The notes beneath the pieces are model-generated. The model made no database searches. It had not been told where the DNA came from and saw only the letters and a program-made list of their open reading frames with translations. The translations under genes and the position numbers were made by a program. This document shows, in pieces, positions 12,945 to 32,518 of a stretch of 34,885 nt of DNA (its first letter is position 1; each line of letters begins with the position of its first letter). This DNA is from Polymyxa betae A26-41 (Eukaryota; Protista; Endomyxa: Phytomyxea): assembly GCA_003693705.1 (NCBI GenBank), contig RBZT01000934.1, positions 1 to 34,885 of the forward strand. Direction: 5' to 3'.

Positions 12945-14951
12945 ATGTGTGTGATGTTGTTGCGGTGTTGGCGTCGACAGCTGATGGTGGGCGCCGCGGC
13001 TCGGGAGATGCAGCGCCGCGGCCGGCTTCTGGCCGGCGAATCGCGGTTCCGGGAACTGCGCGAGTCGGGCGCCACCTATATCGACAAGACCGCCTTGATC
13101 GATGATATGATCGCTACCGATCATCGATTCGTTCTGTGTCGGCCGCCGTTGTTCGGCAAGACGACGACCGTCACGTTGCTGAAGGAGCTGTTCTCCGGCC
13201 ATAAATACTTGTTCGATGGAAGCGTCGGTGGCTCACGTCTGCATATCTGCGATACGCCCTGGGATTGGGCCCGCGACGTTCATGAGGTTCCGTTCGTTCC
13301 GTTTCGTTTGTGCGTTATTCACATTTGCGGATGTCTTCTCGGATCGTCTAATCCTGTGGTGACCCGCATCAAGGGTTCAGGCGACGGATTCTCCCACGTT
13401 TCGAACCAAGGCTCATCTTAGTTTTTGAACGCTTTGCGACAGCGCTCTTTTTGACACATTGTTATTCGTTGACGTTTTGGAAACGCACTTTTGTGTTGTG
13501 GCTTTTATGACTGTGATCTGTTTCTGTGTTTTCTTCGCAGTTTTCTTTCAGCTCTTTTACGTGATCAAACATGTCGAAATTTTGCGAGATTGTTTTCTCT
13601 TTCTTTTTAAATCCTTTCTGCAACTTTCTCGTTGTCTACGTTATTTTGTTAACGGGGTGCTGTTACTAAGGTGTTGCATATCGACCTGAAAACGATGTCC
13701 GAGAACCCGGCCACATTCCGTCAGACCTTGCTCGACTGGATGGCAACAAAGACCGCGGCCCTCGGCGGCGCCGTCTCCAATCGGGACTCGCTCAAGACCG
13801 CGGTCCGCGACCTCATCCGAGCGGCGGCCGACGCGTCGCCCAGCGGCCGCTGCGTCGTACTCGTCGACAACTACGACGTAGGTGCTGGGTTGCCCCGAAC
13901 GTCCGCCGCGCGAATCTGAACCCCGGGTGGTCGTACAGGCCCCCATCCGTCAAGGCGACCCATTGAGGATGTCGAAGCCCGCGGGCTTTTATCTGTTGGA
14001 GAACGCCCAGGTCCTGTCCGATTGGATTTCCGGAATGCGGGCGGAGTCCGTCTTGATTCGATTTCAGGTAGGCGAGCGCGTGAACCCTAAAACCCTAACC
14101 CCAACGTCGTCTTCGTAGTTCTTCGCCGGCGTCTACAAAGTCCGCCTGAACGTGTTCGACACGGCCGTCGATCTGTCGGTCTCGAATCGGTTCTCGCCGC
14201 TGTGCGGGTTCACACGCCGCGACCTGATCGGCCATTTCGGCGACGCCCTCGACGACCTCTGCGATCGCCTCGACTATCGCGGCGGCCAGCCCGAGGCGCT
14301 CGACGCCCTCGACGTCTGGTTCGGCGGATATCGCTGGGGCGACGTCCCCGACGCCGACCAAGTCCATAACCCGTACGCCGTCGTACGGGCGCTCATCGCC
14401 GGCGAACTCCGACCGTACTGGTCCGATAACATCATCCTGCCCGAATGGGTCCGAAATCAACTTCAAGGTAACATTACCACACTCTCGGATTCGCTTTCGA
14501 TCGTACCGGCCCCCTTCACTCAACGGTTCGGTGTCTGTGTAGATGGTGCGCGGAAAGTCGTTCGGGACGCGCTGTCGTCCGACGATCGCATGCAGCTGCC
14601 GGAGTCGTACGACGCCGCCTCCCGATTCGATAAGCGCGGGACGCTGCTCCGGGATCAGGTTCGCCTGCAGTTCCTGCAGCTGGGCCTCCTCACCGTACGG
14701 CATGTCGATTACGATCCGGAGAGCCTCCTGCGCATCGCCCGGTAATAATATCATCGCCCTCGAAATCTTGTCGGTTTTTTTCTGCGTTTTCTCCGCGGGT
14801 TTCGCTCTGCGTTTTTGTTCGACGTGTGGCGTGGGCTGGTATGACCGTCCGTAGGCTGGAGACGCCGAATCGGGATGTGCGCAGCCTCATGGATCGTCTG
14901 TTATCGGAGCCATCGGTGACGTCGGCGGCTCAGCTCCGTACTAACCCGTAA
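12945..14951 (+). CDS. Bacterial-type AAA-ATPase-like protein (PF09820-like), 5 exons
   Basis: GESRFRELRESGATYIDKTALI, RPPLFGKTT (Walker A), VVLVDNYD (Walker B variant), FFAGVYK, LCGFTRRDL, WFGGYRW, VHNPYAV, PYW, LQLGLLT, LETPNRDV in family order. GT-AG introns at about 13287-13670, 13878-13938, 14068-14118 and 14742-14854; TAA 14949-14951. Start at ATG 12945 or 12954. Confidence 0.85.
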
Positions 14952-27479: not shown

Positions 27480-28960
27480 GTACACAATAAACCGGCCATA
27501 TATTGATGTTTCGCCCTTCATTGTGCATTCCAACATTTTCAGTCGGGCGTCGCCCTCTTTCAACGCTTCTCATCCTGCATAGTTCAAGCAGTTGGCCTGT
27601 TGCTGCTCATGCTGCTCTCAGAGTGGCGCTCCTATCCAATGACTACCTCCCCAGCTCGAATCAGTGAATAATGTATTTGGAAAACCATAAATGGATGTTT
27701 AGAAGTGACCCCATGGATACCCCATGGGGTGGAATGTACGGTCCGATTGGATCATGCACCGACTTAATGGTACACTTGATTCTCTACCTGACCATGATCA
27801 AGTTTCATCAGCTGGCTGAACCCGTCGCTGGCCCGTTTCCGGTCGCTGTACAGGCGAATGTTTCAGTGTCGCGGACGCCTGAGCTCGGGTTGGTGACTGG
27901 AAAGGAGTATTGCTCTGGAAGCAATCCAGAGAAATCAGAAGAACTAAGGTATATAGCCGACGATGGATCAACATTTTGATTGAGTCCATGTCCGGGTTTA
28001 TATCTTTTGATTTTCCAGGCTGGAAACGGACTATTTGCTCACTTATTATGCCAATAAGTCTGCTAATTTCATTGTATAGACCTTATAAACGGTTACGATC
28101 CATCATGTAAAAATGGAGGATAGCCGCTTCTGTCATGGTCACTGATCTAACATCGGTCTTGGTGTTGATAGGCGACGATGATTTGCTGCTGCAGTTGCAA
28201 GCGACCAGAAGGGTGATCTGGCTGATGTTCGTTCAAGTGGCCATTACAGAGGCTGTTGTAGTGGGATGAATTTTAACAAATCAAAACCTACTCGAATCTG
28301 TTGCTTCGGATGTCATTTGTGCCGTTACCGAGTGGTACATCGTTTGCGAGCCTTCACATGTTCTGATTGCATATCATGGAGGCCTCTTCAATTGAAATCG
28401 TCCGATTTCTGTATTGAAGGTAGCTCCTATGGCTGTATCGTTCATAATTCTCTTCGGTTTAACCAACTTCTCGATCGCTCGTCTCAGTTTTGTCTATTTT
28501 CTTGTCCGCCAATCTGAAGTGCGTGGAACGACTGACATGCAACGGATAGGACGATGCCAATGGCTTACAAATGAACAAGACATTTGTGCTGACAATAACG
28601 CCCTCCATCTGGATTAAGCTATCTATAACCCCAAACCCTAAACCCTAACTCCAGTATCATGATCAGCGGCACACCATACTCTGCGTCTGTTGTTCCATTC
28701 TGTCGTGGTGATGGGGCGGTGCTGCCCCCACCAATGTTATTGCGTACTTGGTTCGTGGACGGTCGCACATTGTCGTGTTGTCGGCGTTGTCGTGCTGGGA
28801 TGGATTGCCGCGGCGTCGTTTTATTTTGGAATTCCGGCGAGCACGGTGCAATCGCTATCCGGACGATGATGTCGTGAGACGTGAGCAAGTAACGGCAGAT
28901 GATAGCGATAGGCAGCGATACAGATATCTTTCCTGTTGAAGATGTGTCTGGACATCTCCA
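27480..28960 (+). pseudogene. Decayed tandem paralogue of the downstream 4-TM sensor-like gene
   Basis: Collinear fragments: FPVAVQAN vs FPSAVELD; WRIAASVMVTD vs WQVLVKVMITE; ISGTPYSASVVPFCRGD vs ISGKPYTASIVPFGRPD; LPRRRF vs LPLRRF; many stops and frameshifts. Boundaries approximate. Confidence 0.7.
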
Positions 28961-29236
28961 CTCCAATATCGTCGTTCGAGATCTGCACTTTTTTTTCCAA
29001 ATTCAAAATTTTGCAACTTTAGCGAACTCCGCAACACGATTTCCGCAATTAGCAGCAGCGAACAGTATTGTGAATATCGCCCTGGTTCGCTGTACAATGC
29101 TCCCGTTCGGTCGTGGATTGCTCTGCGAAATAGTCAACGAGATCACTCGGGTAGGCCGTCGATCGCCAGGGGGGAGGGGCGTTATTGACCGGATCGATCG
29201 TACTGGTGGAGTTGCGATCACCATCCTCCTTCGACG

Positions 29237-32200
29237 ATGAAGTCGTCGACCGGTGACGTGCCCAGTATCATGCCCACCACGACCCATACTGGCCCTGCAT
29301 TCGGGTCAATGTCCGGGGCGGGGACCTCGGCCACGTCCGGCAAGAACTCCAGCTCCACTAACCAATTCAAAGTAGGTCCGAGGGCGGCGCCCTGCCCCCG
29401 ACCGTACCGGCCCCTTCTCTCCCTCCTCCCCCCGGTTCTGACTCCGCCTGTAGAAGAAACAGATCGATAAGCTGCAGCAGGTGAAGCGGAGGACCATTGG
29501 GGCCGCCATCATCGTCGACCTGATCTTGGTCGGCGCCCTCATCTACCAGCTGGTGTCGCTGAATCAGTCGTTGACGGGATTCCTGCGCACGAAGACCACG
29601 AACACGCTCGCCTTCTACGACTTCCAGTACAACGAACTGTTTGATGTCGCGGTAACGTCTGTTCGCGATCTTCGTTTCTCATTCACCGTTTTTCGATAAC
29701 CCTAACCCTAACGTTCTTTTTTGGCATCGGTTCTCCTATGGCTAAAATCTGTCAGGAACTGGGACAGACCGTCTATCTGAACAATAGCGGAGCGTGTAGA
29801 GCTCTGATCCACTCCGATACAGCCGCAGCTGCGGATTTACGTCGTCGTTTCCTGTACGATAGAATCTGGCGGACGAATGAGATTCTGGCGATGGTCGATA
29901 ACAATGCCGCTGTGGTCAGCAGCTCCGGGCCGGAGTCCGCACGCGGCCTCAACTTCGACGTGGGCGGTCTCGTTTCGCTCTATATGCAGCATTATGCCGT
30001 GTCCGGGAAATCGCTCCGAGCCTCGGTCATGGTCGATCAGGCCTATTACACGATGTTTCAGGCGCCCATCTTGGATGCCGTGGGCGATTACCGACCCGAT
30101 CTTGTGTCGTGGGATAAACAGGCCCAGACACTGGCCCGTGTAACGTTAACCCCGGTCTATTGCGACCAAGCGCAGCCCCAGGGGTTCCTGATCAACGGTT
30201 TGCACGCAGTTTCTGTTCAGATTGTGTCGTTGTTTCGCAATGTTTCACTTCTAGGGTTTAGGGTTTAGGGTTCACCATCTCTGACCCTCACTGCGTAGTG
30301 GATTCGATCACGCCTCGCCAGTACGATTATTTCGGGACGATGCTGCTCAGTGCGAAATCCGCGATGGGCGGCGTACTGGCCCAGAACACGGACACCGCCG
30401 TCTGGCAGACGGCGTTCAGCTACAACCAGCCGGGGCCGTACGGGGCGACGACCCGGTTTCCGGACATGGCCAAGGACATCTTTCCGTCGGCGGTCGAACT
30501 GGACGCCGCGATCGCTGCCGGTTCGGAGTCCGTCGTCACGGGGACCTTCACTTACGGTACGACTCGAGTGTGTGCTGGTTGCGATGCGCCATCCGTGACG
30601 GCATCGCCAGAGAACGTCCGGTACCAGTACGCGATGAAGGCCGTTCGGCCACTGGCGCTGGGCGGCGACGACCTCCAGTACGACCAGACCGCGACCAAGG
30701 TCGTGTATCTGTATGCGGAGCCGCAGTCGCCGATCCGTTCGGCCGTACATACGGCAATGACGTGGCAGATCCCGTGGATCGTCATACTGCTCATCTGGAG
30801 TACGATCTCGTCCCGGTTTGTCCGTAGGTGCCACGGAGTTTCGGTGCTGGGAATCTGAACTCCGTGCCCAGTTCGGAAATTCGTGTATCCGATGCAGAAA
30901 CTGATCGAATCTGTGAAGAAGAAGAAGTGGGTTGCTTCCGATTGATGATGCCCCCCCTTAATATTACGCGAATGTAGGATGAAAGAGTTCAATGATCTGC
31001 TGCGGCAAATGAAAGCGAACCGATCTGCGCTATGGCAGGTACTGGTCAAGGTCATGATCACGGAGGCCGTACTGGTCGGCCTGATCTTCGCCAACAACAA
31101 CCTGCTCGATACGGTCGCGCCGGACTTTACGTCGGCCGCCACGGAGGTCCGCGCCTCAGCTGGGACTGAAACGTGACTTGGATGTAACATGATCTGCTCA
31201 GGGCCGCGTCCTGACTTACGTTATCACGAGTCGCTCGATCAATCTGCTGTACTATCTGGCGGCCTGGTCCACGCAGTCCGCGGTGGTCGCCGCTACATTC
31301 CTGAGGACGGATGCGGCCGCGCTCCTCTCCGATACACTCACCTCACAAGCTCAATCGCTATCAGTCGACGCGATCTGCGTCATCGGCCTGTACGACCGTC
31401 ACGGACTCCGCGAATGCCGTCTGATTCCGTCATAGCGATTCCCAGATCATAGCGAGCTCGTACGCACCCGCCGTCGGCAACGCCTTTCCGGAGTCCGGTC
31501 TGATCGAGTATTTGGCCAGTCAGCCGCGCGGCCTCGCTCAAGCTCCGTTCACGACACACGCTGCATGGAGTCCGGCGGCCCTCAATGCTACAAGCTCCGG
31601 AGCTCTACACGGCCCCGCTGGTGCGCCGGGTCTCGTTCGGATGAATGTCGCCCCGATTCGCAACGTTACCTATGATAGTCCGTGCGAGTGTTACGGACTT
31701 GCGAATGGTACTGAATAGATGCGAGCAGGCTCCACGGATGCGCTTGTGTATGGTGACCTGCTGGGCGCCGTCGTTATCGTCCGATTCATAAACGGCGCCG
31801 ATTCTATCTGGATCGTGGACTACTTCACACCCGGATATTTTGGTCCGTACGCAGGAATTACGGACATACTGAAGGTTACTGACAGTCCGTGGTGACATAG
31901 GACTGCACCTCTGGGATCGATATCATCAGAAATTCGTCGCTCTGACATCCGTCATGAAGGTTGGAGTCGAACGAGGGTTTTAGGGTTTAGGGTTTCAGGG
32001 TTTGCTCACAGGAATCCTCCGGCCGCATGCGATGGGGTTACGACATCAGCACCGAAAACCCTGATCTGTTACCGTCCGGACTTATCGCTATGTATAACAC
32101 GGACCATCTCAGCATCCAGAACGGGGTCACGATCTCCGGCAAGCCGTACACGGCCTCGATCGTGCCGTTCGGCCGCCCCGACGAGGTCGTACTGTCCCCG

Positions 32201-32518
32201 TCCGTGGTCAACGCCTACGTGGTGCGCGGCCTGTCGAAGACCGCCTGGAACGTGGTCCGCTACGAACAGCTCGGCCTCGAAATCATCAACATGGTCCTGG
32301 TCGTCCTGATCGCCGTCGTCAAGGTCGTACTGGCCTGGCTGCCGCTGCGGCGATTTCTGAACGCGTTGGAGCGCGCCTTCACGGTGTCGTCGGTGTCCGA
32401 GGATCGGGCCGCCAAACGTGACCAGGCGATCGCGAGCCTGATGGAGGTCGGACAGGCGCACGCGACTCCGTCACGCATGTCCATTCCTCCAGCTTATGCG
32501 GTCAATAAACCGATCTGA
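29237..32518 (+). CDS. Multi-exon 4-TM protein with two extracytoplasmic Cache-like sensor domains
   Basis: Chain of GC-rich exons with GT-AG introns from MKSSTG (29237) to TGA 32516-32518. TM spans IGAAIIVDLILVGALIYQLV, WQIPWIVILLIWSTIS, VLVKVMITEAVLVGLIFA, IINMVLVVLIAVVKVVLAW. Internal duplication (LARVTLTPV..GFLING vs LVRMNVAPI..GAVVIVRFING). Confidence 0.8.

Follow-up and report, generated by a model that had tools for sequence, protein, structure and literature searches.

The 34,885-nucleotide (nt) contig RBZT01000934.1 of the Polymyxa betae A26-41 assembly (GCA_003693705.1), analyzed here at its full length and called the window, carries an intron-rich gene for a predicted membrane receptor on the forward strand at positions 29237-32518. 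The gene extends from a start ATG at 29237 to a stop codon at 32516-32518 in 12 exons, and the spliced coding sequence of 2,580 nt holds 859 codons and one stop in an intact frame. The encoded four-pass protein probably consists of two tandem transmembrane (TM)-sensor-TM units, whose sensors are homologous to a Cache-clan domain of about 280 amino acids (aa) in cyanobacterial chemoreceptors and which have lost the HAMP, GAF, and methyl-accepting chemotaxis protein (MCP) output of those receptors.

All 11 introns are of the GT..AG type, measure 46 to 104 nt, and are removed in contigs from two studies (runs X1 and X5), which are therefore taken as transcript assemblies. An initial annotation, made from the sequence alone, had described an intronised eukaryotic gene, and the 11 spliceosomal introns bear this out; the spliced model built on the transcript contigs has 12 exons and reproduces the annotated coordinates exactly. 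The contigs begin at positions 29203 and 29218, the first ATG inside them is at 29237, and they end at 32492. Two raw RNA runs (X10 and X13) contained no reads of the organism. Given these limits, the stop at 32516, and an AATAAA at 32504-32509 within the last exon by the stop, no further coding exon is expected, including any that would add a kinase or cyclase output domain.

Hydropathy analysis of the spliced product finds four TM segments and supports the proposed TM-domain-TM unit present twice. The layout comprises a 59-aa N-terminal tail, TM1, ectodomain 1 (∼316 aa), TM2, a 37-aa linker, TM3, ectodomain 2 (∼306 aa), TM4, and a 56-aa C-terminal tail, in agreement with the short cytoplasmic tails noted initially. 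The N-tail, linker, and C-tail carry net charges of +7, +8, and +3 (in the linker, 11 Lys/Arg outnumber 3 Asp/Glu), while both ectodomains are net negative and contain two N-x-S/T sites each. Because of the basic tails and linker, the acidic loops, and the N-x-S/T sites, the N terminus is predicted to be cytoplasmic and both loops to lie outside. Each sensor is thereby placed in the extracytoplasmic position between two TM helices that is characteristic of Cache domains, as a prediction from hydrophobicity, the positive-inside rule, and sequons.

Profile-profile comparison shows both predicted ectodomains to be homologous, as judged from sequence, to the periplasmic sensor domain of cyanobacterial PixJ/PilJ-type MCPs. 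The comparison was made with hhalign against an alignment of seven cyanobacterial periplasmic domains, and unless stated otherwise the two halves of the window protein were represented by joined-exon models together with their paralogs. Ectodomain 1 aligned over its full length (98.2%, E value of 4e-14, 264 columns) and ectodomain 2 over 224 columns (96.9%, E value of 1.7e-10), and inclusion of the TM segments extended the alignments to 292 columns for half 1 (98.9%, E value of 1.6e-17) and 238 columns for half 2 (97.6%, E value of 2.6e-12). Decoys, consisting of the reversed and 20 column-shuffled profiles, reached at most 1.4% (E values of ≥0.036). The resemblance of both repeats to cyanobacterial chemoreceptor sensor domains, which had been proposed from the motif order, is thus clearly separated from the background. 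The window ectodomains also matched as single sequences (68% and E value of 4.6e-05 for ectodomain 1; 91% and E value of 1.2e-06 for ectodomain 2). Among individual exon models, exon 3 alone gave 98.0% (E value of 2.7e-13, 114 columns), followed by exon 9 (60%, E value of 8.6e-05, 68 columns), exon 12 (7%, E value of 0.005, 49 columns), and exons 4-5 (7%, E value of 0.005, 62 columns), and the weak exon-level matches (exons 9, 12, and 4-5) all fall in colinear register. Identity to the cyanobacterial domains is about 22%. The consensus of the seven sensor domains (EYATLVG, Ge.FDP.GLV, LIRYTVTPV, GVLVSGDIVNGK, GYSAVY, YT.AA, AILVRG) reproduces the cyanobacterial motif order that the initial annotation had given. 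The motifs quoted there for the protist protein are all present in the spliced product, except that the final G of GFLING comes from reading through the exon 3 donor site and the spliced sequence is GFLINV.

A search of 301 cyanobacterial genomes with the exon 3 profile (E value of ≤0.05 per genome) returned matches in 27, the best at an E value of 1.7e-6 and 11 at ≤1e-4. All but three weak ones lie in open frames of 867 to 1,164 aa, and all strong matches fall in the periplasmic domain of chemoreceptors with the order TM-sensor-TM-HAMP-(GAF)-MCPsignal. Each of the seven frames examined with Pfam shows TM1, about 280 periplasmic residues, TM2, HAMP, and MCPsignal, with a GAF domain in five; we take these receptors, from their architectures, to be of the PixJ/TaxD1 and PilJ types. 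Control searches gave matches in 1 of 301 Pseudomonadota, 2 of 201 Bacillota, and 1 of 151 Myxococcota genomes. The Pseudomonadota match (a 66-aa open reading frame [ORF] with a stop) and the Myxococcota match (a 104-aa ORF) were rejected as chance by size and score. One Bacillota match was scanned and is of the xanthine-dehydrogenase type, and the other, an ORF of 790 aa whose start is nearly identical, is likewise taken as chance. With the four control matches judged in this way, true matches in the three other phyla number 0 of 653 genomes.

The initial annotation called the protein a Cache-type receptor. This holds transitively, through the cyanobacterial domain, and a direct match of the protein to a curated Cache model was not reached. 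When compared with 13 dCache_1 domains from four genomes, the cyanobacterial domain aligned over 169 columns (63.6%, E value of 6.7e-5), and in one cyanobacterial member the dCache_3 model scored 42.1 bits (cutoff, 25.7); CHASE4, dCache_3, and sCache_3_3 stayed below threshold in the other members. Judged by profile similarity, this cyanobacterial domain belongs to the double domains of the Cache clan as a divergent member. Direct hhalign comparison of the protist ectodomains with the same 13 dCache_1 domains gave 0.2 to 17%, which is not significant. AlphaFold2 (AF2) models of exon 3 (predicted local distance difference test [pLDDT], 53.6) and of the open frame of exons 4-5 (pLDDT, 62.6) are both of low confidence and suggest a PAS-like order of elements, the latter including 18 retained-intron residues as a low-confidence loop. 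The best structural matches of the two models are PAS, CHASE4, and dCache chains, among them 3lid, 3lif, 4xmq, 4jgo, and the CHASE4 structure 8wct. The assignment of the protist ectodomains to the Cache clan, by transitivity and with predicted folds that agree, can be regarded as well founded.

Across the seven cyanobacterial receptors, no Pfam model reaches its cutoff on the ∼280-aa periplasmic domain except dCache_3 in one of seven, and the PixJ/PilJ-type domain seems to lack a curated model. In the Polymyxa genome, the dCache_1 model has a single match (13.9 bits, E value of 0.44) in a 205-aa frame on another contig (C822:3705-3803), which could reflect noise or a Cache-type protein of no relation to this family.

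HAMP domains comprise about 50 aa that form two amphipathic helices and a connector after a TM helix. The alignment of half 1 continues through TM2 and ends with RKFVYPMQKLI opposite the proline-led start of true cyanobacterial HAMP domains, which agrees with the HAMP-start-like P-x-x-x-hydrophobic helix described initially at this place. The motif LPLRRFLNA occupies the same place after TM4, where the likeness to HAMP is by position and motif only. HAMP (PF00672) has no match on the exons or in the genome, while MCPsignal (PF00015) has none on the exons and its only match in the genome, 21.4 bits on another contig, lies below the cutoff. Of HAMP, only the proline-led first turn is recognizable. 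These searches, together with the blank Pfam result on the exons, uphold the earlier claim of a receptor with no output domain, and because HAMP beyond its first turn and MCPsignal are absent, the protein cannot be called a chemoreceptor as the term is used for bacteria. Each element of the initial annotation that could be put to a test is borne out, and none of the findings it had named as refuting was seen.

The gene belongs to a family. Exon 3, exon 12, and their profiles match seven to nine further loci in the genome (on contigs C935, C204, C968, C663 [twice], C566, C31, and C288), and tblastn with the spliced model recovers both halves in order in C935, C204, C663, and C968. Because these paralogs span both halves in order, the two-unit layout predates the expansion of the family. 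Exon 12 is the most conserved exon among the paralogs, and the best-conserved short motif (Y.PM.RFL..LEKAF.VPSMS) is cytoplasmic and follows TM4. Two members appear damaged or partial: a TGA interrupts the counterpart of exon 12 in C31 (19043-19477), and only parts of that exon are matched by C288 (26167-26346). One frame of 259 to 284 aa (L018) seems intron-free but reads through two in-frame introns. Just upstream of the window gene lies a decayed, lower-GC family fragment with an internal stop (28177-28374 and 28605-28823, forward strand), the pieces of which resemble aa 439-508 (44% identity) and aa 712-787 (34%).

Exons and sequence motifs of the putative receptor gene (nucleotide positions refer to the window; joints are exon junctions seen in the X1 and X5 contigs).
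Feature	Position	Strand	Residues (aa)	Content
Exon 1	29237..29371	+	1-45	Start codon; Ser/Thr/Gly-rich cytoplasmic N-tail; joint 29371/29454
Exon 2	29454..29651	+	46-111	Basic stretch, TM1 by hydropathy (aa 60-80, 29496-29558), start of ectodomain 1; joint 29651/29756; conserved in five paralogs
Exon 3	29756..30197	+	112-259	First PAS-like module of ectodomain 1 (predicted); part most like the cyanobacterial receptor sensor
Exon 4	30299..30556	+	259-345	First half of second PAS-like module of ectodomain 1 (predicted; AF2 of frame 30301-30822); joints 30197/30299, 30556/30611
Exon 5	30611..30823	+	345-416	Remainder of second module; TM2 (aa 397-415, 30766-30822)
Exon 6	30872..30926	+	416-434	Cytoplasmic juxtamembrane helix with VYPMQKLIES (30886-30912), putative remnant of HAMP start
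Exon 7	30978..31146	+	434-490	Remainder of basic 37-aa linker; TM3 (aa 453-473, 31033-31095); start of ectodomain 2
Exon 8	31202..31389	+	491-553	N-terminal helices of ectodomain 2 and first strand DAICVIG; aligns to cyanobacterial IEYATLVG region
Exon 9	31436..31677	+	553-634	Ectodomain 2 part IIASS..GNAFPESGLIEY..LVRMNVAPI; in expected register in hhalign
Exon 10	31729..31842	+	634-672	Ectodomain 2 part GAVVIVRFING..PGYFG; aligns to GVLVSGDIVNGK..GYSAVY; joints 31677/31729, 31842/31901
Exon 11	31901..31959	+	672-691	59-nt exon; start of second module of ectodomain 2; joints 31842/31901, 31959/32012 in X1 and X5
Exon 12	32012..32518	+	692-859 + stop	Remainder of ectodomain 2; TM4 (aa 780-803, 32276-32347); LPLRRFLNA (32339-32365); 56-aa tail
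Repeat 1 motifs			153-159, 164-167, 175-185, 198-204, 213-217	EILAMVD, VVSS, GLNFDVGGLVS, LRASVMV, QAPIL
Repeat 1 motifs, continued			237-245, 254-258, 421-429	LARVTLTPV, GFLIN, YPMQKLIES
Repeat 2 motifs			567-577, 619-627, 646-656, 734-740, 759-764, 801-809	GNAFPESGLIE, LVRMNVAPI, GAVVIVRFING, GKPYTAS, AYVVRG, LPLRRFLNA

Intron 4 (30557-30610) is 54 nt long, in frame, and free of stops, and through its retention the second module would gain 18 loop residues (GTTRVCAGCDAPSVTASP). In the C204 paralog, the frame is likewise open across this position; X1 and X5 both show the intron removed. Seven single-base differences (29819, 30451, 30452, 30486, 30673, 31351, and 31554), probably strain variation, separate the X5 contigs from the window, to which the X1 contigs are identical. 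Plant-type telomere repeats (TTTAGGG/CCCTAA) occur in introns 2, 3, and 11 (29700-29712, 30254-30272, and 31976-32005), with further telomere-type repeats in the window at 1716, 2093, 14083-14102, 19647, 28627-28645, and 34303. The sequence GGGTTTAGGGTT, at ≤1 mismatch, has 12 matches in the window versus 0.08 expected.

Searches for named relatives of the protein returned little. Pfam on eight exon translations gave noise only at E values up to 10, and PDB sequence profiles gave no match for exons 3 and 12 over the same range. A word search with exon 12 found nothing among proteins of 92 to 294 aa, and two pattern scans of metagenome contigs, like pattern scanning of bacterial genome contigs, found no relative. 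A phmmer search of exon 3 against 1.84 billion protein representatives returned three matches, none of them a named relative: a 3,212-aa repetitive Bacteroidota protein, rejected as a spurious summed score, and two exon-sized environmental fragments. Feature-based searching of the ESM Atlas gave scores of ≤0.83, which are a lead only. Literature searches turned up no report of a plasmodiophorid protein of this kind.

Several observations weigh against reading the protein as a tandem pair of cyanobacterial-type sensors. None of the curated Cache-clan models (CL0165) matches the protein itself, either in the Pfam scan of the exons or, for dCache_1, at the gene. The two halves do not score above shuffled sequences when aligned to each other pairwise, and their profiles match at 85.9% with the TM segments and at a nonsignificant 16 to 21% when these are left out. 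Half 2 gives weak matches exon by exon (60% and 7%) and owes its significance to the joined-exon model; the exon 9 profile gave noise only in a HMMER search of the 301 cyanobacterial genomes. The reciprocal search of the Polymyxa genome with the cyanobacterial profile reached E values of about 0.04 only, with both matches being family members. The distribution sample consists of genomes from four bacterial phyla only, and the sensing role would follow from homology.

The origin of the sensors was addressed with a tree that combined seven eukaryotic half-domains with 12 domains from cyanobacteria. Each of the two halves forms a monophyletic group (100/100) whose stem measures 3.7 to 4.0 changes per column, and the backbone is unresolved. 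Constraining both halves together costs 0.47 log-likelihood units (approximately unbiased test [p-AU], 0.41), so that a single acquisition followed by tandem duplication is allowed, not demonstrated; long-branch attraction would favor the same picture of the tree. The sensor part may have been transferred long ago from a cyanobacterium-like donor, with intron gain, tandem duplication, and family expansion to follow. We infer such a direction and donor as the economical reading of the distribution. The domain could instead be an old eukaryotic or other bacterial Cache-clan domain, of which the cyanobacterial receptors are merely the best-sampled relatives. The very long eukaryotic stems, the unresolved backbone, the low identity to cyanobacteria, and the sampling of only four phyla are consistent with this, as are the two environmental exon-sized fragments and a eukaryotic range that would lie beyond the sample. 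We nevertheless consider it quite unlikely, as the matches are specific to cyanobacteria (27 of 301 genomes against no true match in the 653 others), the comparison with cyanobacterial domains is significant where that with dCache_1 domains is not, and the alignment through TM2 into the start of HAMP points to descent from the whole N terminus of a receptor of that type. An artefact, whether by contamination, pseudogenization, or chance open frames, deserves mention given that the P. betae draft assembly was derived by binning of a root metagenome (PMC6328671) and that a decayed family fragment lies just upstream. The intact 859-codon frame with 11 canonical introns spliced in transcripts of two studies refutes it, the introns contain telomere-type repeats of the host genome, and paralogs occur on seven or more other contigs, which together leave this explanation with practically no weight.

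In the reading we favor, the two sensors would retain a signaling role. Both ectodomains would face outward, where they would bind small ligands or cues from the host or the soil, and the two units may pack like the subunits of a bacterial receptor dimer to form a four-helix TM bundle within one chain. Ligand-induced helix movement could then be passed to the short, conserved cytoplasmic segments, namely, the basic linker and the tail with its Y.PM.RFL..LEKAF.VPSMS motif, which would act on a candidate partner. Pseudo-dimer action is proposed by analogy with bacterial receptor dimers, and signaling through a partner and a part in zoospore chemotaxis or host sensing are proposed along with it. 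As the main alternative, the sensor fold may have been kept in a protein with no signal transduction of its own, such as a binding or auxiliary subunit (e.g., of an ion channel, like the Cache-bearing alpha2delta subunits of calcium channels), an adhesin, or an organizer of the zoospore or plasmodium surface. The lack of an output domain in the gene, the lack of HAMP in gene and genome, and the short cytoplasmic parts suit this alternative, and descriptions of eukaryotic Cache proteins have so far been limited to channel subunits and their relatives (PMC8915833). The TM segments and juxtamembrane motifs, including the HAMP-start proline, are kept among paralogs at 30 to 55% identity, which fits transmembrane coupling better than passive anchorage, and the family profiles match no contig carrying ion-transport domains; we regard an auxiliary role as somewhat unlikely. 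A bolder scenario is that a plasmodiophorid captured the sensor end of a cyanobacterial photo- or chemotaxis receptor, made it a covalent dimer, and rewired it through its cytoplasmic motifs to a eukaryotic effector (perhaps an ion channel or kinase). This appears unlikely to us at present; if true, the captured and rewired sensor would represent a new class of eukaryotic surface receptor, one that steers zoospores to host roots.

The gene is real and expressed, and it varies the architecture of a known sensor superfamily. Bacteria rely on Cache-type domains as their chief extracellular sensors; descriptions from eukaryotes are almost confined to calcium-channel alpha2delta-like proteins with a VWA insertion (PMC8915833). 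The P. betae family represents a second, independent eukaryotic use of a Cache-type domain, in which the domain is specifically kin to cyanobacterial chemoreceptors, occurs as a tandem pair, and has lost its bacterial output. With this family, the question of how a transmembrane sensor from bacteria can be recoupled to eukaryotic signaling may be studied on a definite example. Polymyxa is the vector of the sugar-beet rhizomania virus, and we know of no receptors for zoospore host finding in Polymyxa and its relatives; the seven to nine candidate surface sensors provide an experimental entry point to this process. On the bacterial side, the cyanobacterial PixJ/PilJ periplasmic domain is a family worth a curated model.

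Among known systems, the closest is the sensor of cyanobacterial PixJ/TaxD1 and PilJ MCPs, which resembles the protist ectodomains over nearly the whole length, lies between two TM helices, and has a similar size (∼280 versus 306 to 316 aa). Shared motifs (cyanobacterial/protist) include IEYATLVG/EILAMVD, Ge.FDP.GLV/GLNFDVGGLV, and LIRYTVTPV/LARVTLTPV, together with the proline that opens HAMP. The protist protein differs in retaining only the first turn of HAMP, in lacking GAF and MCP signaling domains, in carrying two sensors in tandem in one chain, in its 11 introns, and in an identity of only about 22%. With the Cache double domains (CL0165: dCache_1, dCache_3, and CHASE4), it shares the predicted extracytoplasmic, TM-flanked site, and the low-confidence models of half 1 suggest two consecutive PAS-like modules; the link to their curated models is transitive. 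Like alpha2delta and CACHD1, it would be a membrane protein of a eukaryote that has Cache-type domains outside the cell and no enzymatic output. The dCache_1 proteins of eukaryotes are reported always to have a VWA domain inserted into one of their Cache domains (PMC8915833), while in the protist protein Pfam finds neither VWA nor dCache_1 on the exons, there are four TM segments and two separate ectodomains, and the closest kin are cyanobacterial chemoreceptors. The homodimer of a bacterial receptor or sensor kinase differs in that the protist units form one polypeptide, joined by the 37-aa basic linker and strongly diverged from each other; the two systems are alike in having two sensors and four TM helices per unit and a proline-led helix after the second TM segment, an arrangement in which the tandem units may pack in a dimer-like manner.

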